This document shows positions 3,659 through 29,900 of a stretch of DNA of 61,864 nucleotides, in pieces. The notes under the pieces are model-generated. The model searched no databases. It was given only the letters and a program-made list of their open reading frames with translations, and was not told the DNA's origin. Origin of the DNA: Hyphochytrium catenoides (Eukaryota > Protista > Hyphochytriomycota); assembly GCA_900088475.1 (NCBI GenBank), contig FLMG01003767.1, positions 1-61,864 on the forward strand, given 5' to 3'. The position numbers and the translations under genes were made by a program. The stretch's first letter is position 1, and the number at the start of each line of letters is the position of its first letter.

Positions 3659-5050
3659 ATGCCTGGCATTGTGCCGCCAGTGCTCTGGCGATGGCTATCG
3701 GATCCAACTGGGAGGAATGTAGCAGGTATAGCCCAGAAGGGCGAGCCTCAGTACATCGAGAGCAATGCAAAAACCACGGTGACGCAGGCTCATGTTAGCT
3801 CACGAGGGATCTCTGGTTCCCCCAGTGGAGAGCCAACTAGAGACCCGGAGACTGTCGCCGATCTCACGCTTTCAAGCAAGAGTGAAAGCTCTACAGCAGC
3901 ACCTTCGAGTCTAGCAGCGTCTCCTCAAGGCAGGAAGAAGCCTAAGAAAGACGGGAGACATCCAGTCAGGCGGCCTCGCAACCGAAGCTTCTCCCGCCTT
4001 CTTCTACCCTCTCAAGTGGGCCGAAAACGGGCGCAAGTGACGGTAACAGTCCGGGGTGCGACATCGTATCTGAAGCAATATGCCGTCTATGACATTGATA
4101 TTGCCTGCTATCGGACTCATCTAAGCGATGAATCTTCTGCGGAGCCAGGCTCTTTGCGACGTTGGACAGTAGAGAAGCGTTACTCAGCAATGAAAGAGTT
4201 CAATGAGACGCTCTTGCAGCATCTCAGACCGTCGCACCTCTGCACAGGCACTTGCCCTGTGCTTTATCAGCATCTTCTCTATGACTTTCCTAATCAGCGA
4301 CTGTTCCGTCGCTCTTGGAAGGCTTCAGTCATCAAGAGGCGGATCATCTCTTTGCAGAAGTACCTGGATGCCCTCATGTCGATCCTAAACTCTGAAGCTT
4401 TCTATCGCTGCTGCATTGGTTCCGAGATCTTCAACCTTGTGGCAGACTTCCTTCAGAGCGATGGATGCTGTGCAGACTCTAGCTCCGGATCCTCAAACAA
4501 GGCTAGTCCTGCCTCATCTCCTTCCGAGACGGAGGAAGGTGTAGTACCATGCCATGACGAGAAGTCAGTGTCGGGGGCACTTCCAAAGGATGAAGGCCTG
4601 AAGATTGATATGCTCATACCTCCTGCGCTCCTTGCTGGAGAGAAGAGAGACAGTACCGGGCGCTGTCTGTGCTGCAAACTCTCTCTTGAGGACGTCCTTC
4701 CTGCTCATGCATCAGGCAAGCTAAGGAGCAGGGTTGGATCACGTCGCAGTATGGCACCAAATGGCAGTACAAGGAATGGCAGTGCGAACGCTGCAGCGGC
4801 AAGCCCCTGCTTTAGCTCTGGAGGAATAGAGACACACTTCGTCTCGTCAGGGAGCTTTTCTCTCTCTCAAGGCCTGGAAAGTATATCTTCGGTGGAGTGT
4901 GGGCTTTGTCACAGTGATCGCGACCTCATCACTACGCGTTTGCCTTGTGGTCATTACTTCCACGACGAGTGCATTTTGGAGTTCTTCACCTCCGCGAGTG
5001 ACGCAGGCAAAGAGTTTATTTGTCCTGTTTGCAATTCGACTGTATCCTAG
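3659..5050 (+). CDS. PX domain + C-terminal RING-H2 protein (putative E3 ligase), intronless
   Basis: 463-aa ORF. PX signature YAVYDIDI...WTVEKRYS...FPNQRLFR...IKRRIISLQKYL; RING-H2 CGLC...LPCGHYFHDECI...CPVC. Confidence 0.85.
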   Translation: MPGIVPPVLWRWLSDPTGRNVAGIAQKGEPQYIESNAKTTVTQAHVSSRGISGSPSGEPTRDPETVADLTLSSKSESSTAAPSSLAASPQGRKKPKKDGRHPVRRPRNRSFSRLLLPSQVGRKRAQVTVTVRGATSYLKQYAVYDIDIACYRTHLSDESSAEPGSLRRWTVEKRYSAMKEFNETLLQHLRPSHLCTGTCPVLYQHLLYDFPNQRLFRRSWKASVIKRRIISLQKYLDALMSILNSEAFYRCCIGSEIFNLVADFLQSDGCCADSSSGSSNKASPASSPSETEEGVVPCHDEKSVSGALPKDEGLKIDMLIPPALLAGEKRDSTGRCLCCKLSLEDVLPAHASGKLRSRVGSRRSMAPNGSTRNGSANAAAASPCFSSGGIETHFVSSGSFSLSQGLESISSVECGLCHSDRDLITTRLPCGHYFHDECILEFFTSASDAGKEFICPVCNSTVS

Positions 5051-6018: not shown

Positions 6019-7868
6019 ATGGGACGATCTCCATCGCCATCAGGGTATAGAAGGCGGTCGAGGAGCCGGAGTTTACGCAGTGGGAGCCGCCGGGTGTCAA
6101 GGAGGGAACGTAGCAGCTCAAGAAGTCGCAATGACCGGTACGGAAGTTCTTCTCATCGCCAGCGATCAAGATCAAGAAGCCCCAGAAGAGATAGAAGGCG
6201 GCGATCCCCTTCTTCTGACTCTACCCGCTCATCCAGAAGAGATAGAAGGCGGCGATCCCCTTCTTCTGATTCTCCCCGCTCTTCAAGGCGCAAAAGGTCC
6301 CGGGATCGTGGAAGTGGAGAAGACCGACACCGCCAGAGAGGTAACTCTACCTCGCGCACTACAAGGCAATCTCAAGACTCTTCTAAACTCCTGAAAAGAA
6401 GGGATAAGGCGGATGCTGATAGAGAGCAATCAGCAGCGAGCTTCTCCTTTAACGCAGTGATGCTGTCAGAACGGCTTCATGAGATCAGCAACATGCGAGC
6501 CAGAGACGAGAAAGCAGTGGAAAGAAAGTTGAAGCAGCTGAATGAGATATTGCATCCAGACTTCGCGCTGTACAGTCTCCAGGACGGACGGAAGCTCCTA
6601 GAAAAGGCTGACTTTGAGACCAGGTAGACCCTTTGCCTCTCTTTGCAAGCAGCAGCCGGCTACCTCCGTCCCGCTTTGCCGATGTCTGCCCTTCCCTTCT
6701 TCTTTTGGAACCCAAGCGGTCTCTTTCCATCTTGTCTTCGTTCTCGACGTCTGGCCTTTTATTCATTAGTCTTCCCTTCTTTCACTCCCACCTTTCTTTC
6801 TTCGTTCCATTCCCCTATCTGGCTCTTGGGTCAAGCCGGGGCCTTCATCAACGGATCCTCTCTTTCTCAGATTCGTCTCTTTCTCTCTCTCTCACACACT
6901 CTCTCTCTCACTCTCTCTCTCTCTTCGCCAACGCTCACTCTATGTACAGCTCGCTCGCTCCCTTCTCCCTCTTTTGCCCTCTCGCTCTCTTGTCCTTTAA
7001 TAAGCCATATTACCCCTCTCTGCTTTGCGCTTGGCCTCAACATCTCTCTCGTTCTCCCCCTTCTCCTTCTACGCTTCCTTGCTCTCACTCCTAGTATTGT
7101 CGAACTCCTTTGTGTTCTATCTCGTTGTCCTCGCCTATCTCTGGTCTGCACGTCAGCCACTCTCTTCGATTCCTGTCGTCTCTTACTCTTGGTCTGTTGT
7201 TTATTTTTCTCTCGCTCAAGCCTTCGCTTATCTGTCCTCTTGCACTTGTGTCCTCTAGGTTGGACATGTACCCTCGTTGTGGTCCGTTCATTAAGTTCTC
7301 CCTTTTTCCTAGTTTATCGCTTACGTCTCTGGCTACGCCTCTCCTCAAACCAAGTCTACTTCATCCATCTAGTTCTAACATGAACCCGCACTCTTTTCCC
7401 GTTGACCGTCTTCTTCCCCTCAGAATGCGGAAGCGCTTCATGAACAGTCCAACAATGTCTGAGAACATTCTCAAGAGGTTGTTTGTCGAAGACATCCAGG
7501 TACGCTAGCTCCGTTGTGTCAATTCTTCAAGAAATATAGAACCCTGAATCTCATCCCTACTTTGAACTTAGGATCCGTCTACCACGTACGCAATGGACTT
7601 CTTTGATTATAAAGACATTGTGGATGAGCTCGAGGACGGCTTTCAAAGTGGCTGCAGGATATGGCTGCTGGGGGCAAGGGGAAACTTAATCATTAGCATC
7701 TACGAGGGAGAAGATGAGGATCTAGTTGGTCGAGAGGAAAGCAAGGGAGAGAAGGATCTCCTAAGTCTCGATTATGTGAGGGAAGGGCTGAAGCGACTAG
7801 GTCTGGACACGGAGAGAGATGTCCGGTTGCATTACAACGACTATCACAATATAGAAACCATCGGGTAG
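6019..7868 (+). CDS. Arg/Ser-rich hypothetical protein, 3 exons
   Basis: The RS-dipeptide N-terminus (MGRSPSPSGYRRRSRSRS...) joins in frame through 6019-6623, 7424-7499 and 7572-7868 with GT-AG introns. The C-terminal domain is not recognised. Confidence 0.65.
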
Positions 7869-14167: not shown

Positions 14168-15886
14168 ATGGCGGCCGACGGTGACGCCGACAGCCCCCGA
14201 CAGGAGGAGAAAGATAGTGCGGGCGGCTTGATAAACGATGGATCAAGGAGTGAGCCACCGGGCAACTCTACCCTTGCCTCTGTCGGAGGAGAAGACTTGC
14301 CCACCTCCAGCTTCGATTCTGCCCTTCTAGCAGACCGCTCGTCCACAGTAGCTCACTACCTCCAACTCCCAAGCAGACGGCACTACACCTCTTCGGGCGA
14401 AGGAGGGCCCACTGCCGCCCATTTGAACTACAGCGGGAGCAGCATCTCGGGCGATGAGGACGATTATGATATTGATATGTATATGGCAGAGGTCACGCCA
14501 ACAGCCTCCACAGAAGAAGCAGATGAGCTTCAGAGCATGGAGCTATCGAAGGAGAAGAAGTGGTTCCGGAAGAGCCGGAAGAGTAGCTTGAAGGCTGAAA
14601 GAGAGGCAATGGGTCTTGCTTCCTTGGACAAACTGACAGAGAAGAACCCGTCCGCTAGCCCCTGGAGGGCAAGATCATACATCGTCCTCTTGCTTATCAT
14701 TATTAGCTGTGCGCTTCTGCCTATCACTATGCTGGTCTGGTACATTCGCGATCTCTTAGTAGACCCGGAGTACTGGGTAGCAGTCACTGGGCAGATGGGA
14801 AGGGATCCGATGGTACAGAGAGCCGTTAGCATCGCTCTCTCTCAGCACATGGTCAAGGAGATCCCTGAAGGCGTAAGGACAAGTTTGGAGGCCAACGGTA
14901 CCTATGATGATGTTCTTTTCCTCATCAACTCCACGTCACGCAGCGTTGTGAACAGCACAGCCTTCCCTGAAGCCTTCGACAAGGCCAGCTTTGCCGCTCA
15001 TTCGGTCTTTGTCTTCGCTTCCACGGGAGAACAGTCGTCACCCGCGGTAGAAGCAGAGCCTGGGCAAGTCTATCTAAACCTTTCTTCTTTAGCGGTTCAG
15101 GTGCGGGACGACCTAAGCCAGGAAGGATATGCAGCAGTTGTGGGGCCAAACACCACGGAGCCTTTCTTGATTGTCATCATCAACTCGACGGCACTGGCGG
15201 CGAATCAAGGAATTGTGAGAGCTGTAACTTCCTTTTTAGCCTTAGGACTGCTTGTCATCGTCATGATGATGTTTATCTCTGCGATGTCCGTGGCTACGAA
15301 CAGGAGGCGGGCATTTGACTTCATCTGCGTGGGCATTGGAATCGGCGCCGTCTCTCTTGGCTTGGTGGCAATGATCTCCATGGAGTATGCCTATTCTGGA
15401 GACTCGACAGAGCTTGGGCCGGTAGTTTCCAAGCGCATTGAGTTCTATATGTGGTCACCGCTTTGTCAAAGGGCTCTGATAGTCTATGCTGTCTTTATTG
15501 GCGTCTACTTTGCCTTACGAATGGCATATGCGGTGAATGAAGCGAGGAATAGCAATGTGACGACCAGGAATAGATATAAAGCTCTTCGGAGGACGTTCTG
15601 GATCTGGGGCCCCGTATTCTTTATGAGCGTTGCGGGCTATGTCCTCTTGGTCTACGGCTTTGTCTTCCTTGGACGTAGCTACGCGTACAGGGATGAGGCC
15701 ATCCTTGTTCTCTCTCTCGCTGGGGGCCTGGCGCTGCTACTGATCATGGTGTCAATGGTGATGAGACATCACACGAAGCGTCAGCAGACAAAGGCAATAG
15801 AGGCGTCAGGTTTAGCTAGTTCCTCAAGGGCCGCAGATGGACAGCGCGTGAGAAAGCGTGATTCCCCAGAAGCAAGTCCAGCCTGA
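14168..15886 (+). CDS. Intronless multi-pass membrane protein resembling an actinobacterial integral-membrane family
   Basis: 572-aa ORF: low-complexity N-terminus, one TM, a ~150-aa soluble domain, then about five TMs. Confidence 0.85.
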   Translation: MAADGDADSPRQEEKDSAGGLINDGSRSEPPGNSTLASVGGEDLPTSSFDSALLADRSSTVAHYLQLPSRRHYTSSGEGGPTAAHLNYSGSSISGDEDDYDIDMYMAEVTPTASTEEADELQSMELSKEKKWFRKSRKSSLKAEREAMGLASLDKLTEKNPSASPWRARSYIVLLLIIISCALLPITMLVWYIRDLLVDPEYWVAVTGQMGRDPMVQRAVSIALSQHMVKEIPEGVRTSLEANGTYDDVLFLINSTSRSVVNSTAFPEAFDKASFAAHSVFVFASTGEQSSPAVEAEPGQVYLNLSSLAVQVRDDLSQEGYAAVVGPNTTEPFLIVIINSTALAANQGIVRAVTSFLALGLLVIVMMMFISAMSVATNRRRAFDFICVGIGIGAVSLGLVAMISMEYAYSGDSTELGPVVSKRIEFYMWSPLCQRALIVYAVFIGVYFALRMAYAVNEARNSNVTTRNRYKALRRTFWIWGPVFFMSVAGYVLLVYGFVFLGRSYAYRDEAILVLSLAGGLALLLIMVSMVMRHHTKRQQTKAIEASGLASSSRAADGQRVRKRDSPEASPA

Positions 15887-18313
15887 GAAGTGAGGGACAG
15901 CACGACTGCCCCCATCGCCTACATCTTTTCAAGGACAACATAAGGGAGTATCTTCTGTCACGAAGGAGGACCCGTCAAGACTCATGGCTGTGAAGGCTAA
16001 GAAGTAGTAGAGACGCAACGACGGTACCAAAGGAGGCTGCGTTATCGCAAACAATCCTATTGTCACGACCTGCAGCGCCAACTTGTTCCAGCTGGCATTG
16101 CCCTCTGCCCTTCAACGATCCTGACTTCCAGCCTAGAAGCGAGGAGAATGCCCGGTCACTCGTCCGTCTTCAAGCGGAATGTCATACCCTTTAGCCTAGC
16201 AGCGTCCCAAGAACTGAGCAAAGAACAAAGGATATGAGATTAGGAAGTAGCTGGGTCTGTCATAGGCGACGATGTCATGAGAGATTCATCCTCTCAGAAG
16301 CGACCTGCTGCCTTCACTTGAGAGTTATAGACTAAGTATATTGACCGGCATGGATCTCAGACATCAAAGAGTGTGCCGTCCTCCTTAGACTCTTCTCGTT
16401 CTCTTTTGTCCCGTTCATAGCTCATTGAAGAAGTGAAGCCTGTAAGCTCGCGTCGCCTGTAAGCTCGCGTCGGTGCCTGTGAGCTCGGGCCGGTGCCTTA
16501 TGAGAGTGAGACCAAAGGTCACATGATGGCGGAGAGGCGCGAGACAAGGAGAGAGAGGAGCAGCAACAAGCTATGACATTGTTGGCCAGTAGCCGAGGGA
16601 TAGTATGTAAGGGACAGCTCCTCGTCCGCGGCACTGAGTGACGCATCCAGCGAGGTTCTTGGGAATGAAGAGCTAGAGGCAGATGCTGTCTGAGAGTTAG
16701 TTTAACAGTATCTTTTTCATAGGCCTCTTATAGACAATGGAGGATAAGAGCAACGAAGAGCCGCGCTGCCACCACCATCGTCGTGATGCCTGTCCTAGTT
16801 CCTCGGGCTCTCCCTCTTTGTCCAGCTCTGCTACTGTGCCAACTGTCACTAGAGCTTTGTCCACTTCAGCGCTTGTATCGACATCATTGGTGCTTCTTCT
16901 TCTGTGCACATCAGTGTCTCCTACCGAAGTGATGATAGGTCAGACACGTCGAGGAACCAGTCGTCAGGAGAGACGAGGAGGCCAACGAAGAGAAGGACGC
17001 TGGAGGAGAAGCGTCACCTCTGAGATGATGACGCTAACAATGATTGTAAGGATCCATGAAGGGAAGAGATGAAGAGAGGAAGATGGCTTAGAAGATGAAA
17101 GAGGACAACTCGTCTTCTTCTTCTTCTTCTTCTTCCTGTTGTGTCTCACATCAGCAGCAGCGTGAAGATGCAGACCCTTTCTCTTTGAGGGCTTCCTTGT
17201 ACCTCTTCGTCCCGCTAGACTGGTAATAAGATAGGAAAATAGAGACTCTTTCTTTCTTTCTTCTCTCTTTGTCTCTCGCGCTGTCTCTTATTTTCGTCGG
17301 TCATGGCCTACTTGAGAGTTGTACAAGTACGAGAATTTCCAGGAGCTGATACTTATACTTATGCCTGTAATACCATACAGCAACACAGCAACATATGTTA
17401 GTCGATTTACAAATAATTGCGTATTTCTTTTATTTTCCCAAGTTGAATTACTTACCTCAGGTTTACCGAGGTTAGGGGATGGATGGGTCATCTCCTTGCA
17501 CTGGAAGAGGAGCGAAGACGCTGCCCATCCATCCTGTGTTGTCATAGTCACGAGAGGTGGTCGATGTACTCTACCCACCCGCCCATGCAGTTGTGACTAC
17601 CCCGACTCCGTGATAGAAAGACAGCTAACCTTTCTTCTTCTTTGCATGTTGAGGTTCTACCCGGACTCTTACTCTCTCTCGGCAAATGATGCCAACAGTA
17701 ATAAAGACGAGTGTAGAACTAGGACCCTGTTCGCAGACATACTTATAAGGTAGCTTATTAGCGATAATCATCTCTCTACAGCAGAGCTCAGTTGAGAAAC
17801 GCAATCTACCGTGCAAGTGCTCTTTCCTTATTAGCAGTGACTAACGAGAGACACCTCTGTGCTACTCCTCAGCCCAAAGACTCAACAACTCTGTTCTCTA
17901 ACAACTTCTACATAGAAAGTTGACTCCACTTACAAAACAGTAGTAGAACTATGTGGTAGTATTCTCTACAGTAGATCAACTGAGAGGTTCAGCTGATATT
18001 CGGTATAAATGTTGGAATAGCGTACTGATGGTGGATAGAGAGTGCAGTTCTGGAATCTCCAAACCTAAGATGTGGCAGTGATGGACCCAAGCCAGTCCAG
18101 ATAAGGTGTGAGCCAGCGTGAAGTGGAGATGGAAAGGAGTAAGAGACAGAGGGAGTCGATAATACAGCTTTTGATCAGATATACGCTCCGATGAGGTATT
18201 AGTACAACGAGGAAGAGAGACATCAGAGATATAGCGTAGTTCTAAAGCTCTAAACTTCCCGAGACGGCTGTGTTCTCTCCCTCTCTCTCTCTCTCTTTCT
18301 CTCTCTCTGTCCT

Positions 18314-18356
<43 letters not shown>

Positions 18357-18438
18357 NNNNNNNNNNNNNNNNNNNNNNNNNNNNNNNNNNNNNNNNNNNN
18401 NNNNNNNNNNNNNNNNNNNNNNNNNNNNNNNNNNNNNN
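18357..18438. other. Assembly gap (others at 19066-19120, 42284-42344, 47628-47647, 55890-55948, 59154-59207)
   Basis: N runs, several adjacent to CT microsatellites. Confidence 0.99.
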
Positions 18439-18665
18439 CCCCCTCTCCCTCTCTCCCCCTCTCGTTCTCTCTCTCGGGCGTTGATCTTAGGTCACACAGA
18501 TCCTATGAAAGATTTTGGACCATCCGAGAGCCCCAGAATCATTCAACCCAGAGTAACGCCTGTCTCATGGTCTTCTCTCTGCTCTGCTCTCTCCACAAGT
18601 CAAGGAAGAACCATTGCAGGAGCAATGATGTCATCCAGCATAATAGTGGCAGTTTACCCAGTCTA

Positions 18666-18699
<34 letters not shown>

Positions 18700-19120
18700 T
18701 CTCCGTTTGTCTCCTTTCCTCTCTAACCTTTCTTTTGTATAATCTCGATTCGAGGGCTGAGAAGCTTCTTATCCTACAGCGTGTTCGGGCCTAGTTTTCC
18801 ATCTCTGACCCTTGGCAAGGTACGAACAACTTGAAGAAGACAGAAAGACAGAGAGACTCGGGACCTAATAGGGGAGAGTCGAAGGGAGAGAGAGAGAGAA
18901 AGAAGGAGGGAGAGAGAGAGAGAGAAGAAGAGAGAGAGAAGAAGAGAGAGAGAAGAAGAGAGAGAGAGAGACTTAGAGAGAGTCATCGTCAGTCCAAGCC
19001 CATAATACACCCAATACTGCAGAAAGCAGCGCCTGATACTGATCCTGCTGGCTAGGAGCAGAGAANNNNNNNNNNNNNNNNNNNNNNNNNNNNNNNNNNN
19101 NNNNNNNNNNNNNNNNNNNN

Positions 19121-19180
<60 letters not shown>

Positions 19181-19548
19181 CCTTCTCCTCTCTCTCTCCT
19201 TCTCTCTCTCTCTCTGAATCCCTCACACACTCTTCCACCCTGCCACTGTGTCTCGTGCCCCTTCACCCTACAGAGATCCCAATTCCAGCATTCTTATTGC
19301 AGAGCTGAAGTGCAAAAGTTAGGACAGGGCGCTCGCGCCGCCGAGGAGATCCCGAAGTTCCGATCTCACTCTCTCCATCGCTCCTCCTTCACCAGCAGCT
19401 CATTGATTTCTCTCGTTGTCATTGGAGCTTCAGATCTCTATCATCGGCTGAGCTCATTGACACCACGGACAAAAGGAGACCGCGGCAAGATCTAAAAAGT
19501 CAGAGACATTGAGAGAAGCGTTGGACTATAAGCAACGGCGAAAGAACG

Positions 19549-20791
19549 ATGGTGATTCTATCACCTCGTCTCTTAGCATTTCTTTGCCTGTCGATGGCAG
19601 CTTTGCTGTCCATCAGAGCGCTAGCCCAGGCGGCGGACGAAGGTACCCCAGCGAAGCGATCAAAAAGAAAGAGAGATGTTGTCGAGGAGAAAAAGAAAGG
19701 GAGAGAGAGCTAGAGAACTAGAGCGAGCGTGTGGCACGAGAAGAGACGAGGATCACAATCAGAAAAAGGAGCAAGAGCGTGCGAGAGAGTGAGAGAGAGT
19801 GTGTGTGTGGAAGAGAGAGAGAGAGAGAGAGAGAGAGTGACAGGTGAAGGGATTAGGTCCACAATTTGAAAGTCGAGTATTTCCCTCTCTTTCACACACG
19901 TTTGGCACGGCCATCACTTCCATATCTCCTACCTTTGCTCTTTCTTCTCTGTCTCGCACTGACCTTCCCTTCTCCCTTTGTCTCTCCCTCTTCCGTGGCT
20001 CTCCCTCTGTAGGATTGCTTTACTGCACAGGGAAGATGGGCAGCTTGGCCACCACTTGCGCCAAGCTCTCTGTCAATCCTGAGGGGCTGGAGGAGTGCTG
20101 TGCCATTGCCGTAGAGCTGAACGAGCGCAACTGCTTTTGTTATCCAGAGATCACGACGAAGATGTCCGATGAAGAGAAAGAGCAGACTAAGATGCTTATC
20201 ACCGGGATGTGCAGTAGAGGAAAGTTTATCACGGGCGCAGAATGTCCAGCTGCGCTCAACAAGAGTCCAGCTGCTGAAGGAACCCCAACGAGTAGCACGT
20301 GAGACACTCTCAATCTCTTCGCTCCCTCCAAGGGAGAACTCCTCTTTCTGATCTCTGCAGTGCCAATCTTCTTGTCCCAAGTGGTCTCAGTTGTCTCGTT
20401 CTTCTGCTTACCGTCACTCTGCTTTCCTCTTTCTGTATGTCTCTCCTTCGCACTTCTCCCGTCTCCCTTATCTGTCGGCCTGACTCCGGGCTGTGCCATA
20501 GGCCACCGACTCCCCACGCTCCCGTCGTGGTATCTAACGGACAGTTGGGAGAGATCATTGCCAATCTCTCCCCTGAAGAAATACGGGAGCTTCTAGCTCT
20601 CTCGGCAGACCTGATGGACACGTTGAATAACATGATCTTTGGGGCGATGATTATCTACGGCATCTGTGTGCTCTGCTATGTTGCTGTTCTGGTCTACATG
20701 CGATGGAATAGGAACTCGGCACTACGTGGAGATTCAAGCGCAGCCAAGAAGGTCTGCAACATCCCCTTTTCTTCCTCTTTTCCTTCCTCCA

Positions 20792-20826
<35 letters not shown>

Positions 20827-23800
20827 TTACTACTGTTTTCCTCTCCTCTACAAGAAACTCCCTAGTGCTAGGACCTGTCCTTTCTTACAACGGCCACTTG
20901 TTTCTTCATCACTTTCTCGCACAGATGTTCTCACGACCGTCCCGCTATTAACGTCTCTTTCACTCTGCGGATCTTGTTGTCAGGTCATCCTTCCTGCCTT
21001 TGAGCCTCTGCTTTGGTTTATGGCCATCGACAGTATGGCTTGGTGGGGCCTATTTATTTATCTCTGGATAGAGAAGAGTGCTGACGAAGTAAGTAAAGCA
21101 TTCCTTTGACACTCTCATTGCCAATGATCTAACCCTCTCTCCTCTCTCTCTCTCTCCCTCTCTCTCTCTCTGCCCCTCTAACTTGATTAGCGGCACATCC
21201 GTCCCCTGTTTTTCTCCCGCGTGGGGATTATCTTGGCCCCCATCATCCTTCTTTATCACAAGTCCCTCTCTTTCCGGAACACTGGGATGTCCATCCTCTA
21301 CACTCTGATTATACAGGCACTTCTTATCGTCCCCTCTACCATTGACGTTATGTCTAAGTCAGAAGCGGAAGACTTTGGCACCAACCCTTGGTCGAAGAAC
21401 TCTATGTTGATGGCTTATCTTCGTATTCCTGTTATCCTTGGGATCATCTTGGCCATGGTTTACCGACCCGCTAGAGCTAGGTAAGGACCGTCAAGAATAT
21501 TCCTTGGTTGCGAAATTCCTTGACTAACACCGACGTTGTGTCTCTCTACCCTCTCTCTTGCTATTCTCTCTCCTCTCTTTTTTCTCTCATCCTCTTACCG
21601 TCATCACTTTCTTCCTGACCACGTAACTGCCCGTGTCCTCTCTCTCTCTTTCCGCCTCTGCTTGGTTACCTTCTCAACACATCCTCTACTCATGCCCTAC
21701 AGCCCGTTCACCCTCATGCTTTACCTGGGCTGTTGCCTGATGATAAACCTTCTCTACCTAAGTAACCTGATAGTGCAAGCTGCAGCGTCGTTTGGTAGGT
21801 GGAGCTGTGAAGCAGCACTGCTTAGCTCCTATCTCGTTGTGTTCCCTCTTTGCTCATGAAGCTTCCACACTTCCATCAGATCGTCCGGAGCTGATGAAGA
21901 CGGCTATGAATATTGGATGGGGTTGCTCCGTCTCCTGGCTATTCATCCCTCCTCTTACTTGGCTTCTATTAAGGGCAGACACAGGTGCGCGCTCTCTTAG
22001 TATCACCGCGAGGTCTAGCTCTTAGAAGAGGAATGAGAAGAATTAGAGGAGGGCTATGAGGAACTTGGTATCCCTTTCCTGAACAATTCCTCATAAAATG
22101 TGTCCTCCTCTGTCACGAATTAGACTTCTGGAGAGGCAAAGGACATCGTGCTGCCCTGATCATGCAGAAGATGGAATGTGAGAAGGATATGCCTGAGACG
22201 TAAGTCTTCACCTCTCAAAATTAGACAGGAAGAGTCAAAGCCATCTCACGCGCCTCCTTAATCCTCTCTGTAGCATCTGTGGCGATAAGATCCATACCTT
22301 CCTGGATGATAACAGGAGCTACTTCATCGATTTTGCCTTCATCAAGATGAATGAGAAGGTTGCAACCAACCTTGGTCGCACTTCCGTCTTTGCAGGGCTG
22401 TTGCATAACCAGATACCTGTGGCGATCACTGTGAGTGCCAGCCATTAGGCCGCTTCCCTCTTCCTTGTCCTGTCTCGGTTACTCTATAGGTAACAGATGT
22501 AACGCTAATGCCACTTGATGCTGTCGTAGATTTCAAATCAAGGAGGGAACCTCACGGACCAGCAGCTGTCCAGTGCCACCCGCCAAGCGATTCTTTGCTC
22601 AAAGATGAAACATCCAAATCTAGTAAGTTCTCCTCTTCTTCTTCTCGTTTGTCTACCGCATCAGCAGCACATTTTCTTTCTTGATCGCTATTATGATCGC
22701 TAGTCTAACTCTATGTTTTCTCTCTGCCTATCTCCCAGGTTCGCTTCGAAGGCATCTCTCTCCTCCCACCTCACATATTGATGCTTCACGCCTTACATGA
22801 GAAAAACCTCAGCACTGTTATCGGCAACGCTAAGCGGTCGATGCTTTTGGACATCTGCATGATGCTGGATGCTGCCAGAGCCGTCGCATACCTGCACCAT
22901 GCCTTCAGCCCTCCTATAGTACACAAGCATATCGTGACCGAGAACTTCCAATTGGATGAGAGCGTTAGGAGGTAAGACTCTAAAGTAGTCTAACAGAGCA
23001 GAATGTTGAGCAGACTGCTGATATCCTCATCCACCTGCTTTCCTACCCCTTCCATCTCTCTCCTTTGCTGCTCGGCCGTTCCTTGTATATGAACCTAGCG
23101 ATGGAAGGATCAGACTTGGAGGGTTTGAGCAAGCCATGCAACTGAGGCATCGCAATGGATCTACTTACCGAGTTTCAACTGTCTGCCGTGTAGAGGATGG
23201 GCCTTATCTGGTAAGAGGAAGTGGCAACCCGCCTCAGAGGTTTTCGTCCCGCTTTGTCTTCCTCTGTTGTTTCTCACCGCTATGTCCATCGCAAGCATCA
23301 TGAAGTGACAGAGAGCTAACCGATCTCTTGCGTGTAGGCTCCCGAGGTGCTAACTCATACTCTGAACTCCAGGAATGCCACTGCCGCGGACATTTACTCC
23401 TTGGGCATCGTATTGTAAGTTTTTGCTATAGCTCCACACGACATAAGGCTAAACTTCAAAGAAGGGAGAGAGGCCTAGAGAGGTTTAGGCAAGGCTGAAA
23501 GATGTTGAGAAGATCTCTGCTTTCCTCGTGCTGACGATGAGTTCCCGTCTGGCAGGTGGGAGATTGCGACCAAGTCTTCCTTGGCGGCCTATAAGACCAC
23601 GAATATTGTCCAGGTAGACTCTTCTTCTGTTTCTTCACCTGTTCTCGTGTTCTTGTGCAGAACTCAAGGGCTCTGCCTCTCTCTTGCTTTGTTTGTCCTC
23701 GTGTAGCTTCGCCATCTTGTTGGAGAGGAAGGGGAACGCCCCCCGATCGAGTGCATCAAGGATGTTGACCTGCATGAGCTCCTGCATAGCATGTGGGCCG

Positions 23801-25813
23801 CAGTCCCATCTGAGAGGCCACAAGCTCAGGATGTTGTCAAGTAAGCTCATATTCACATACTCTCTGTCTTGCTATGCCTCGAACCTGTCCTCCTATCCTG
23901 GTGCTCTTTCAACTAATTCGCCAATGCAACTCTCAGCTCCTTCAATTTTTCTCCTTAGAGTACTCGTAAAGACTCTTCACCGCCTCTCCTATTGCCATGA
24001 ACCTTACTGGATTTGCGGCTCTGTTCCTTGAAAATATAGGACCCTCGAAGCGATCCAAGAGGCACAGCTCCTAGACATTGCTACCGCTCTTCGGTCCTAC
24101 ATGGAAGCGAAGTACGCGCCAACTATGTCAAAAGCTACTCAACGGACGATGCGTCGTTCTGGGCGACCTTCTGTCCAAGAGGAGAGAATCGTTTTATTTT
24201 CTGGCGCTGCGGTGGTAGAGTTCCTGTTGCAGCAAGGCTTTGTTCAACACACGCATGAGGCGCTGAGACTGGGCCTTGCACTGCAGGATGCAGGCTACAT
24301 CCACCACTATAAGTAGGATGCACAGACCATAGCCTTTTTCTCCGTACTATCCACTCTCTGACAGTTGCTCTTCCTATTGATGAGCCTTTCCTTCATCGCT
24401 CCACTTTCACCGGAAGTTCCCTCTGCTTGCTCAATCAGAGAATGGGTTGCATCCTTTGCATCCCCTTCATCGCCATAGCCGTCACTCATTTGCTAACTTT
24501 GCATCTGTCCCCATGCTTCCTGTGCTGTTTAGGCATTCGGCCCCTTTCACACACACAAGAAAGAATCACTTCCGCTTCTCTGAGTTCACGCCTGCCCTGG
24601 GCATGGCCTCTGAAGACCATCGTCAGTTTGTTAACCTGGATGGGATGATGTATGGAGCCGTTGTCGGTACGAAGAGCCACCTTGTATGCTCTTCATCCAG
24701 GCCCTCTTCCTGCCTTGGGCTGCGCTGGCACTCTATACCCACTTCCCTCTTTATTCTTGAGCAATCCATATCCCTGCCTCTGACGCTAGTGTCTCTTTCT
24801 TTTTCCTCCGACCTTCTGGCCCCATTAGACCCAGGGAACCCTGAGGCAGCAAGAGAATCAACCCGCAACGATTGGGGCGCTTATCTTCACGATTCTAGTG
24901 CGCACAGTGGCAGTGTGAGAGGAGCTTCCTTTGACTCGGTCCAGACTTCTTCATTAGGCGGCACGACGACGGCGAGCGTCTTGCAGATCCCTTTTACTCT
25001 CAACAGCTGGTGCAACTGCAAGAGGATGGCTCAGGTTCGTGCTCTAAGCAAGCTCACCCTTGCTCCCTCTTCCAGGATTTCTCCATGCTGCCTTTCCTTT
25101 CCACTTATCTTGATGCTATCCCGTCTGCCTGTCTGCTTGGGGCGGGGTGAACCCTTTACCACTTTGCCTATGTGCACCTTGTACTCAGAGTTAAACTTTG
25201 TCCAATCTGTGTCTTCCCGCCGAGTCCGCCACTGACGCCTTATGCAACGATTACTCTCTGCGTTCTTTAGGGCCTAGAGCAGCCGACAGATAAGGCTCCG
25301 AAGGTCCTCCAGTCTTTGAAAGAGAAGTTCGAGAGAAGAGTCAACCAAATCGCAGGCAGTAGACAAGGCCGTACTAGTAAGGCAGCACGCACCTCGCACC
25401 ATCTCAGTCACGACGACTGACTAACACGCTCTCTTTCGTTGACTCTCCTATCCCTCTGTAGCTTCTGTTGCGGATAGCCTTATTGATGAGAAGAGGGCGA
25501 GCGTGTACAGCGCTAGACCTTCTACTTCGGGTCGCACTTCCCATGTGACGGACACAGAAGAACAGAGCGATCATGTGCTGCCTCTGGCTGCGACGGTCAA
25601 GCTGTACGAGGCTCACAAGGACAAGCAACTAGCTATCGTTATCTTCCCGGTACTACGGCATTATCTGTCTTTCTTGTATCGACGCTGCAGAATGACGACT
25701 GACTTGGCTTCTTTCCGATGTCTCTCTTACTGCAGAGCTCCGCGACCGAAGAAGGCGAGGATGGCAACCGCTCCTCCGACCTTCCATACCATCGCGTTTC
25801 CAGCAAAGATTAG
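19549..25813 (+). CDS. Receptor: signal peptide - 8-Cys (nsLTP/prolamin-like) domain - Pro/Thr stalk - 7TM - TKL pseudokinase - DEP domain; about 21 exons
   Basis: Phase-compatible GT-AG exons: 19549-19642, 20013-20298, 20502-20751, 20984-21088, 21191-21480, 21703-21794, 21880-21984, 22124-22199, 22274-22430, 22530-22622, 22739-22971, 23099-23210, 23338-23414, 23556-23613, 23707-23840, 24040-24312, 24533-24667, 24830-25034, 25271-25376, 25462-25649, 25736-25813 (later boundaries accurate to a few nt). Kinase-fold motifs: KHPNLVRF, AVAYLH, YLAPE, DIYSLGIVLWEI, PSERP. DEP motif: FSGAAVVEFL...EALRLGLALQDAGYIHH. Confidence 0.85.
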
Positions 25814-26950: not shown

Positions 26951-29900
26951 ATGAAGATTATCAAGAAGAACATCAGCAAAGATGGAGAAGGTTCCGTGGT
27001 TCTTCGGGCTGAGGATGCGGAGGACATGTTTCACGCGTACAACCTAATCTTGCCAGGAGACATCGTGCGCACAAGTACTGTGAGAAAGGTGTGCAGCCCG
27101 CTTCGAAGGGAAGGGAGTGCTTAAACTTTGATAACACGAGTAGAATAGACTGGAAGAGCTCTCGGCAAGGTACATCTGGACAAGGTAGCACCTTCTAACG
27201 TCGGTCTTTTACCTCGCAGGTGGTGCGCGAAGGCGTTACGGGCTCCACATCCAGCCAGAAAGTTCGGCTTAACTTGACAATAGAGGTTAGAACATTGCCC
27301 GAAAGAGTATATAGCAGCGGGGGAAGTAGGTCTCTTATCACCTCCTTCTGCACAGATTCAAGCTGTAGACTTTGATGCTTCTCAGTGCTCCCTCAGGCTC
27401 AAAGGGAGGAATAAGGAAGAGAACCAGTACGTAAAGGTATGAATGGGCCCGTGGCAGCAGCTAACGGAGGAAAAGCACATCACTTATTACCTCGCTCTCT
27501 CTGTCTCTATCTTTTTTCTCTCAATCTCTCCCTCTCTCTCCCGTCTCTGCTGCCCTCCCCCCATTCTTCTCCCTTCTCTCTCTTTCCTTTACTCTATCCC
27601 TCTGTGTGTGTCTCTCTCTATCCTCATCTCTCTGTGTTCTCCTTCTCTCCCTCTCGCTTCTTTCTCTCTCACTCCTGTCGCTTTCTCGTCCTTTCTGTCT
27701 CTCTCCTCTCTCGCCTTTTCTGTCTCTCTTCTTCTCTTCTCTTCCTATCGCTCGCTCGCTCGTTCTCTTTATTTCTTTCGCTCTCTTTTTTCCCTTCTTC
27801 TTTCCCATCCTTTACTCTTACCTCGTCTTCACCTCTGCCCCCTTCGCGACTTCCCTCCCTCCGTGATGCCGTGGCAATGAAGATGGGAGCCTATCACACA
27901 TTAGACCTAGAGATGAACCAAAACTTTACGCTGGAAAAGGCTCACTGGGACTCCATATCGATAGAGAGACTGCACACTGCGGCAAATATAGAGGAAAAGG
28001 CATGAAAAGCAGCTTCACACGCCTTAACAACGATCATCTTTGCTTCCCTTTTCTTTCTCTCTCTCCCTCTCTCACACAAACACGTCTCTCCTATGACAGC
28101 TAACCACCTCAGTCGCATCACCAGTTCCCATGGCTGCCGCGCGCCTCATTTTGATCCCTGTCCCTCTTTTCTTTGTCCATCGCCACATGCTGGAGGCGCT
28201 TCTGTCCATCCTCTAGCTGCGTATCTCTTCCATCCAATCTTTTATCTCTTCTATAGCGTGCACAGCTGGCCGCCTTAAAGATGCGTTCCTTGGTCTGTCA
28301 ACTCGCGTCGTGCCCTCCACTGTCTCTGATAGGCCTCCCAGGCCCTTACGTGTCATCTCATTACTCCCTCACTTGCTGTACATAGGCCGACATCGCCGCG
28401 GTGGTCATGTCCCTTGGCTTGGCCCACATCTGCCTTCTGACTACACATATGACAATTACCAAGTCACGGATAGAGATGAACATTCCCAAGAAGAGAGCCG
28501 GGAGCTCAGGCCACTCTAAAGGCATCGAAAAATTCTTTGAGGCTATTCTCCAGGTACGCCTGCGCATCCGTTCTGGACCATTAAGCCATCTCCCTCTCTT
28601 GCTTTCTCTTGGCTTGTTCATCTCCAAATCTTCCACCGCTTAATTCGCACTCTCTTTTGATCTACTTGCTTGCTGACATCCGCGTCCTTAGTGAGCGTCA
28701 GCCTACCCTAGAGTGCTCATTTCTTGGTTTTTGACCGTCGCCCTACCTCTTCTCTGACGTCCATTCTCCTCCACTCGAGACATCTCCCCTGCTTTCCCTT
28801 TGCCTGTGCCTGTTTCTACCGCTATCTTCCCACTTTAGCTAGCTAAGAAATTGCACCTACAAATTTTTACGTAGGGCATTCTGCGGCACATTGACTTTAA
28901 GCTGGTGAAAGTGGTGCTAATAGCTAGCCCAGCTTTCTACAAGGAGGACTTTTTAAAGTATATGATGGATGAGGCTGTTCGCAATGACTACAGGGTAAGT
29001 GGGACATCCGTGAGAATACTGGAGAGATCCAAAGACAACTGCATTCACAGAGATTCGTGAGAGAAAAGGAAGAGCCACGAGACTAGAAAAGCGTATGAGT
29101 GATGCTAGAGGGGTAGACTACAAGGTGGAAATGATGGGAAAGACCCGCAACAGAAAGACTGGACGTCATCACGGATGGACTGACTGACTTTATCAGATTA
29201 AGGAAGAGGTTTGATCTTCGTGTTTCACAGATTATAATAGAGAACAAGAAGAAGTTTGTTTTGACCCACGCATCTTCTGGGCACAAGCACGCGTTAACGG
29301 AAATACTGGCGGACCCTGTACGGCAAACCCATCTTCTCCTTCATTCTACGGTTCTCCCCACCATCGTTCTTATCGTTCTTTCCCATTGCCAGATCACGTT
29401 CATAGCGCTTATCTGACTCTGGCTCCTCTGGTGTGCTCTTGACGAAACTCTCCGTTCGCTGCTTTGTCTTCCTGGCCGTCCACTTTCGCTCGGTGCCTGA
29501 GTATTGTCCCAATCCTGCTGATTACGGCTGTTACAGAGTCTGCAGTCAAAGCTGGCTGACACTAAGGCAACAGATGACGTCAGAGCGCTCCAAGAGTTCT
29601 ATGACATGATGAACTCTGACCCTGACCGTGCTTACTACGGCTACAAGGTGAGTATCAGCCTTACTATGGTTCTGTCTTGGGAGATGCCGGCACATCACAA
29701 GTTCACTTCCCTAACTATATCTTTAAGCATTCTATCAATTCTGTCCTTCACCTTTCTCACCTTCACGTTGCTAGACCTCTTTGATTATTCTCTTGGTTAT
29801 GCTCTCTCTTTCCCTTTCCTCTTGTGCATCTCTATCTACTCTGTTTCTTTCGCGCTGCAGTTTCTGCGCAATCCTTCACGGTGCTATCTCTGCGGTCGGT

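Follow-up and report, generated by a model that had tools for sequence, protein, structure and literature searches.

Contig FLMG01003767.1 of Hyphochytrium catenoides, analysed here over a stretch of 61,864 nucleotides (nt; the window), carries on its + strand at 19549-25813 a fragmented coding region from which we rebuilt a receptor gene of 21 exons. It is probable, in our judgement, that this is one expressed, selectively maintained gene and that its product, divergent and kinase-dead, belongs to the oomycete-type GPCR-TKL-DEP bigram family, in which seven transmembrane (7TM) helices of a G-protein-coupled receptor (GPCR) are followed by a tyrosine kinase-like (TKL) fold and a DEP domain. 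That the 5' exons, which encode a signal-peptide-like leader and a domain of eight cysteines, are joined to the receptor in a single gene is very likely; the reading as a whole takes in family membership and the dead kinase as well, and we place less confidence in it for that reason.

Gene model, selection and splicing

In the six-frame list of open reading frames (ORFs), the + strand between 18.5 and 27 kb yields short fragments only. When exons were rebuilt independently from the DNA and joined at GT...AG sites, all introns were GT...AG, every phase was compatible across the 21 exons, and the coding sequence ran for 3165 nt from ATG 19549 to TAG 25811-25813 with 0 internal stops, giving a product of 1054 amino acids (aa) (Table 1). 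The initial annotation had proposed that about 21 phase-compatible exons assemble into one protein, and the same model was recovered here, including the junction 20298/20502; the signal peptide, Cys-rich domain, stalk, seven helices, kinase fold, DEP domain and tail that it listed are all present in the spliced product. The 20 introns lie within 6.3 kb, a density unlike that of Phytophthora, and many of them are rich in CT repeats. Long microsatellites of the (GA)n/(CT)n type fill introns and spacers throughout the window (e.g., 19774-19850, 20785-20834 and 21130-21180) and are the source of ORFs reading "SLSLSL" or "ERERER"; the alignment of sequencing reads is interrupted at them. One internal boundary has an alternative: a donor at 21762 has the same phase as that at 21795 and a strength of 5.4 compared to 6.3 bits, and its use would shorten the region of transmembrane helix (TM) 6 and its loop by 11 aa, to the length found in homologues, with the number of helices unaffected. 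Of all splice choices in the model, those made in the tail, for exons 18-21, carry the most uncertainty.

Table 1. Exons of the reconstructed gene and the parts of the product assigned to them (window coordinates)
Feature	Position	Strand	Description
Exon 1	19549-19642	+	Signal-peptide-like leader with the start codon (residues 1-31); donor GTACCC, phase 1; first ATG after a stop
Exon 2	20013-20298	+	Eight-cysteine domain and beginning of Thr/Pro stalk
Intron 2	20299-20501	+	Links cysteine exons to receptor; donor GTGAGA, acceptor CCATAG/G, in phase; junction inferred
Exons 3-8	20502-20751, 20984-21088, 21191-21480, 21703-21794 (or -21761), 21862-21984, 22124-22199	+	Stalk, pre-TM1 helix, seven TM helices (predicted), juxtamembrane LLRADTDFWRG
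Exons 9-15	22274-22430, 22530-22622, 22739-22971, 23099-23210, 23338-23414, 23556-23613, 23707-23840	+	TKL-type kinase fold lacking catalytic residues (predicted)
Exons 16-17	24040-24312, 24533-24666	+	Linker and predicted DEP domain, interrupted by intron 16
Exons 18-21	24829-25034, 25271-25376, 25462-25649, 25736-25813	+	Tail of low complexity, rich in Ser/Thr, and the stop codon

Polymorphism supports these frames. Contigs assembled from a DNA sequencing run (X1) were compared with the window, and 40 of 62 single-base differences were listed; predicted exons account for 14 of those listed and introns, of roughly the same total length, for 26. Read in the predicted frames, 12 of the exonic 14 are synonymous, an outcome with a chance of about 1e-5 if about 28% of random changes are assumed to be synonymous, and the two nonsynonymous ones are both conservative (Thr>Ser in the stalk, exon 2; Val>Ile in the tail, exons 19-20). 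Synonymous changes occur on exons 1, 2, 3, 5, 12, 16, 19 and 20, among them the single difference in exon 1 (19557), three of the four in exon 2, that at 24094 in exon 16, and four in exons 19-20 beside the Val>Ile change. This excess reflects purifying selection in the predicted frames, and its presence on exons 1 and 2 shows that the frames assigned to the signal peptide and cysteine exons are coding ones. Insertions and deletions (indels) agree: 10 of the 10 listed lie within predicted introns (2, 5, 11, 12, 18 and 19), and across the span of exons 18-21 all are in introns 18-19. Differences from run X1 have roughly double the density in introns that they have in exons. Between 19520 and 25519, many of them stand at about half the local read depth (e.g., 187/370), suggesting that the sample was mixed or came from a heterozygous diploid.

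Evidence for splicing itself comes from RNA and from homologues. A single 198-nt contig from RNA run X4, at a depth of 2.8, covers 21191-21379, and its nine unaligned leading letters, GCTGACGAA, correspond exactly to the final nine bases of exon 4 (21080-21088), so that splicing at 21088/21191, between exons 4 and 5, follows the prediction. A search of RNA runs with a 6-kb query returned no runs, and one with exon 5 gave one weak RNA match. Motifs shared with homologues are completed across the predicted junctions 3/4, 5/6, 7/8, 8/9 and 10/11, which validates these five junctions independently. Pyrimidines make up 0.51 of exon sequence and 0.62 of intron sequence. The exon map is therefore more than a product of chance.

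Receptor, kinase and DEP domains

By the Wimley-White octanol scale, residues 171-411 contain exactly seven hydrophobic peaks (8.5-13.6 kcal/mol). With the N-terminus placed outside, Lys and Arg gather on the cytosolic loops (four on intracellular loop [ICL] 1, two on ICL2, and one plus flanking Arg on ICL3) and the acidic loops face outward, a positive-inside arrangement that with seven helices would place the kinase and DEP domains in the cytosol. The count of seven helices given by the initial annotation is borne out by these peaks and by the alternation of charge. A five-helix topology omitting TM2 and TM7, which are weaker on the Kyte-Doolittle scale, was considered and rejected; it breaks the positive-inside rule, and both helices are the strongest on the Wimley-White scale.

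At the level of motifs, the 7TM and kinase parts are homologous to oomycete GPCR-TKL proteins, matching members from Phytophthora infestans, P. parasitica, Albugo and Aphanomyces. The comparison was made by eye against the first ~400 residues of about 20 oomycete GPCR-TKLs printed in Table S3 of PMC5784254. In the receptor part (slashes mark splice junctions), AAKK/VILPAFEPLLW corresponds to KVILPAFEPLLW in PITG_07248, with a run of 12/12 identical residues, YMRWNRNSALRGD to YMRYNRTVALRGD in Albugo ALNC14_108020, and YHKSLSF to FEKSLSF in PITG_07298. Further matches are RPARA/S/P with PPAGRASP and RPPARAS, LLRADT/DFWRG with LLRADTEYWRG and KADTDHWRG, PET/ICGDKIH with DETISSNRIH, FIDFA with VIDFA, HPNL/VRFEG with HPNVVRFYG, and MLDAARAVAYLHHAFSPP with MLDAARAVSYLHSFSPP in PITG_07217. 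The motifs RASP, LLRADT(D/E)xWRG, ETI..IH, IDFA, HPN.V.F.G and MLDAARAV.YLH.FSPP are held in common with PITG_07248, 07235, 07217, ALNC14_108020 and H257_12125; ALRGD and KSLSF are also shared with described members, and the kinase motifs match PITG_07217 and H257_03183 strongly. Long blocks of this kind, LLRADTDFWRG included, uphold the resemblance to oomycete 7TM-TKL bigrams that the initial annotation had pointed out.

Two points count against placing the protein in this family. The homology is a reading by eye of sequences printed in a supplement, and a search with exon 5, which encodes TM3-5, against 1.8 billion representatives gave no relative at E<=0.001, the one match being a spurious bacterial repeat protein. 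The latter result indicates a gene without a close annotated orthologue. Metagenome scans with exon 5 and with the ORF piece containing exon 4 likewise found no relatives, a search of the Atlas with exon 5 returned generic bacterial membrane clusters only, and tblastn of the model against the 62-kb window gave no paralogue.

The kinase region, like the rest of the protein, was searched exon by exon, and single-exon matches are weak alone but co-linear. Exon 11 matched positions 68-136 of the Pfam family PK_Tyr_Ser-Thr (E = 0.14) and exon 13 positions 165-186 of Pkinase (E = 0.11). In the PDB, exon 11 matched plant receptor-like kinase (RLK)/TKL kinases (E = 0.004), with BIR2 (4l68) at the top and HKH aligned opposite HRD; a PDB sequence search with exons 9, 12 and 13, which are too short for it, gave no matches. 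Fold motifs are retained (HPNLV, APE, DIYSLGIVLWEI, DIYSLG..WE and the C-lobe Arg), as is the catalytic-loop Asn. The residues of catalysis are replaced. VAIT has lost the β3 Lys, the αC Glu is Gln in RQAILC, HKH has lost the Asp of HRD, and GGF in LGGFEQA has lost the Asp of DFG; Val stands in for the Lys of the catalytic loop, and the Gly-rich loop has degenerated to NLGRTSV. The printed homologues, again read by eye, have G.G...V, VAVK or VAIK, HEAALC and HRD, with LSDFGES in A. astaci H257_03183. From these replacements the domain is predicted to be dead, a pseudokinase as the initial annotation had held. The VAIK Lys, HRD Asp and DFG Asp are all missing with the fold kept, the features by which PMC3019232 recognises pseudokinases, and a GPCR-bigram is by definition given a catalytically active accessory domain, from which the predicted dead kinase departs.

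An alternative is that the kinase is not dead: as in WNK or CASK, residues at shifted positions would let it bind ATP or transfer phosphate, and the protein would be a true receptor kinase. Its fold motifs and catalytic-loop Asn are kept, and sequence-based calls of inactivity can err (a caveat in PMC3019232). However, four essential residues are replaced together with the catalytic-loop Lys and the Gly-rich loop, while homologues keep all of them, and we consider an active kinase very improbable. A second alternative is decay: the locus would be a paralogue, now functionless, from an expanded family, and its reading frame would be without biological meaning. Lost catalytic residues, highly diverged TM3-5 and a very low RNA signal (the lone X4 contig) would fit such decay; against it stand a 3165-nt frame intact over 21 exons with canonical splice sites, the strong synonymous excess, exons free of any listed indel, and a transcript spliced between exons 4 and 5. 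The synonymous excess argues that the pseudokinase is not simply decaying, and decay is hardly credible as an explanation of the locus.

C-terminal of the predicted pseudokinase, a single DEP domain is recognisable from the sequence of exon 16, which matches profile positions 18-54 of 72 in Pfam PF00610 (E = 2.7e-5, 24.5 bits) and both DEP domains of P-Rex1 (E = 1.5e-5). The score lies below the cut-off of 32.7 because intron 16 splits the domain and exon 16 was scanned alone. A single-sequence model of exon 16 (predicted local distance difference test [pLDDT] of 73.6) has the DEP domains of P-Rex1, pleckstrin, Dishevelled-2, RGS7 and DEPTOR among its best fold matches, none of them significant for this partial domain. 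A homologue search with exon 16 found nothing in a length range that excludes full-length relatives.

The initial annotation knew of no description of the full architecture, and for its core this does not hold: multi-pass TKLs with an intracellular DEP domain were already drawn by Judelson and Ah-Fong in 2010 (PMC3019232), and the combination of 7TM, TKL and DEP was described again in 2018 (PMC5784254); dead kinases within it are on record as well. In P. infestans, 17 of the 44 GPCR-bigrams are GPCR-TKLs, 8 of these 17 with a single DEP domain after the kinase; across oomycetes there are 4-18 GPCR-TKLs per species, nearly half of which carry DEP (PMC5784254). The TKL group also holds most catalytically inactive kinases, many of them with TM domains, for which HER3-like regulatory roles have been suggested (PMC3019232). 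What looks undescribed is only the ectodomain fused to a receptor of this type, to which intron 2 probably links it. The described members (PITG_07215, 07217, 07235, 07248, 07251 and 07298; PMC5784254, PMC3019232) share with the present protein the order 7TM, TKL fold and DEP, a similar length of the shared part, and long motifs in ICL1/TM2, ICL3, the segment after TM7 and both kinase lobes. They differ in keeping VAVK, HRD and DFG, which the present protein has lost; it in turn has about 20 introns and a TM3-5 region too diverged for phmmer.

Fusions of a 7TM domain to a kinase are also found in amoebae, ciliates, acanthoecid choanoflagellates and sponges, none of them functionally characterised (PMC12716839). 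Those of amoebozoans, ciliates and choanoflagellates (PMC5784254, PMC10463195, PMC12716839) resemble the present protein in having a cytosolic kinase after the seven helices. By their descriptions, however, they are set apart by independent origins and unrelated 7TM domains, and the Dictyostelium proteins lack DEP. Among single-feature likenesses, GPR155/LYCHOS combines seven helices with a C-terminal DEP domain in cis (PMC12716839), and HER3 and plant BIR2 (4l68) are membrane receptor pseudokinases that signal without catalysis; all three belong to unrelated families with other ectodomains and in other taxa.

The cysteine-rich head and its join to the receptor

Residues 1-27, judged by eye, form a signal-peptide-like leader with a hydrophobic core and a likely cleavage site at ALA/Q. 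Exon 2 (residues 33-127) follows with eight Cys at 36, 47, 60, 61, 72, 74, 98 and 109, in the pattern C-X10-C-X12-CC-X10-CFC-X23-C-X10-C. Beyond them, a Thr/Pro/Ser stalk (~120-135) runs over the exon 2/3 junction, and an amphipathic segment, NLSPEEIRELL..., lies at residues ~140-170 ahead of TM1. The Cys spacings (10/12/0/10/1/23/10) presumably resemble those of type-2, D or G lipid transfer proteins of the non-specific class (nsLTPs). The order of the cysteines after a predicted signal peptide is exactly that of the plant eight-cysteine motif (8CM), C-Xn-C-Xn-CC-Xn-CXC-Xn-C-Xn-C (PMC12985213), down to a hydrophobic residue within CXC (here Phe).

The initial annotation called this ectodomain lipid-transfer-like, a description that is not supported as it stands. 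In its favour are the cysteine pattern and a weak lead from a protein language model, in which the nearest Atlas feature clusters of exon 2 are LTP_2, Tryp_alpha_amyl and Prolamin-like, with a best score of 0.80 that is graded as a lead. Sequence comparison does not carry it further: exon 2 matched no Pfam family and no PDB chain at E<=10, so that the head has no detectable sequence relation to LTP_2, Tryp_alpha_amyl or solved nsLTPs, and a set of 5.8 billion proteins held no homologue of 52-165 aa, a range that excludes full-length relatives. An AlphaFold2 single-sequence model of exon 2, which includes strands, is too poor for a fold search (pLDDT 55.5; predicted template modelling score 0.45). 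The plant proteins are, moreover, free and of 6-15 kDa, while the head here would be tethered to a receptor, and the organism is evidently no plant. That the head is a true lipid-binding domain of nsLTP fold, captured from a plant or alga or arisen by convergence, and works as the integral sensor for a receptor of the GPCR-TKL-DEP kind with its kinase turned scaffold, is in our estimate quite improbable. If true, the protein would be the first among GPCR-bigrams whose ligand-binding ectodomain can be identified and a single-chain analogue of the arrangement of Frizzled cysteine-rich domain (CRD), 7TM and Dishevelled DEP, and would supply a concrete lipid-ligand hypothesis for a receptor class without a known ligand.

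Small disulfide-rich, probably helical heads that bind hydrophobic ligands ahead of seven helices are found in fungal Pth11-type CFEM-GPCRs and in the CRD of Frizzled and Smoothened, and in the Frizzled system the DEP domain of Dishevelled docks on the cytosolic face of the receptor. CFEM domains lack a CC pair, however, the Frizzled CRD has 10 Cys, and here the DEP domain is in the same chain; no homology is implied.

The join at 20298/20502 decides whether the head belongs to the receptor at all. An alternative to a single gene is two adjacent genes on the same strand, one for a small secreted eight-cysteine protein of about 127 aa (exons 1-2, ending at TGA 20300-20302; nsLTP- or effector-like) and one for an ordinary GPCR-TKL-DEP protein starting at ATG 20437 or 20614. 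Several observations weigh on that side. The printed oomycete homologues all start 10-90 aa before TM1, without signal peptide or N-terminal cysteine domain, so the fusion has no precedent and two genes would be natural. Unspliced, exon 2 meets the TGA at once, and an in-frame ATG at 20437, or a second at 20614, could begin a receptor-only protein. Among the listed RNA runs, no RNA was found over any junction other than 21088/21191, 20298/20502 included; of the splices set out in the initial annotation, RNA thus confirms that one and covers neither the join nor the rest.

The DNA around the join argues for splicing. A good donor, CAC/GTGAGA, overlaps the would-be stop and is in phase with the acceptor CCATAG/G. 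The pyrimidine fraction of 20303-20501 is 0.70, like that of introns of the same gene, and is still 0.71 after ATG 20437; the value falls to an exon-like 0.545 exactly at 20502, the predicted acceptor. Intron 2 also contains an indel polymorphism, at 20375. Two genes would leave just 134-311 nt for a 3' end and a promoter, compared to neighbouring intergenic gaps in the window of at least 1 kb. The first in-frame ATG of exon 3 is at 20614, and upstream of it lies the conserved-looking NLSPEE segment, which resembles the T-rich TLSPAQ/TLSPQQ segments ahead of TM1 in A. astaci H257_12125 and H257_12133; translation should therefore start in an upstream exon. The Thr/Pro composition of the stalk likewise continues over the exon 2/3 junction. 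We consequently regard two genes as unlikely and a single gene as the better account. Were the cysteine exons separate, the remainder would be an ordinary divergent, kinase-dead member of the family, of modest interest.

Genomic neighbourhood, proposed signalling and significance

Upstream of the gene by about 1.1 kb, a run of N at 18357-18440 marks an assembly gap, seen as X in the ORF at 18270-18794 (coordinates derived from the ORF translation). The heptamer GCTCATT occurs at 19452-19458, 91 nt upstream of the start codon. It matches the oomycete initiator (Inr) consensus in its core; since chance alone should produce a 7-mer several times in 62 kb, the match is no more than a hint about promoter and lineage. 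A gene shortly downstream, at 26951-28005 (+), has several exons and looks by eye like Pelota/Dom34, with MKIIKKNISKDGEGSV near its N-terminus and AYHTLDLEMNQNFTLEK later. Farther upstream on the same strand are three ORFs. That at 14168-15886 is a single exon of 572 aa encoding a multi-pass membrane protein; that at 3659-5050, a single exon of 463 aa, ends by eye in a RING-H2-like Cys/His cluster; and the ORF adjoining the latter, at 6019-6627, is Arg/Ser-rich and resembles an RS protein of the splicing-factor type.

How the predicted receptor might signal can be put forward as a working mechanism. The signal peptide and eight-cysteine domain, spliced N-terminally onto a glycosylatable and probably O-glycosylated Thr/Pro stalk, would form an extracellular ligand-binding head. 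This head may bind an extracellular, perhaps hydrophobic, ligand, and binding would rearrange the 7TM bundle, the change being passed through the juxtamembrane LLRADTDFWRG segment to the pseudokinase. A rigid pseudokinase could then read out the signal without phosphotransfer, as a scaffold or allosteric partner, most likely paired with catalytically active GPCR-TKL paralogues in the manner of HER3/HER2 and plant BIR2/BAK1. Through the DEP domain the tail may be anchored to acidic lipids of the membrane or to the cytosolic side of a 7TM receptor, be it the same protein or a partner; DEP domains have a tethering role in RGS proteins and Dishevelled (summarised in PMC5784254). Ligand, partner and DEP target are conjecture, a further weakness of our reading.

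GPCR-TKLs make up the most numerous GPCR-bigram group in oomycetes, which include major pathogens of plants and animals. None of these receptors has been functionally characterised, and none has a known ligand (PMC12716839). Ligand hunting would gain a first handle from a member whose extracellular domain is discrete and can be expressed, and a member that is naturally kinase-dead could be used to test scaffolding against phosphorylation as the mode of signalling in this family.

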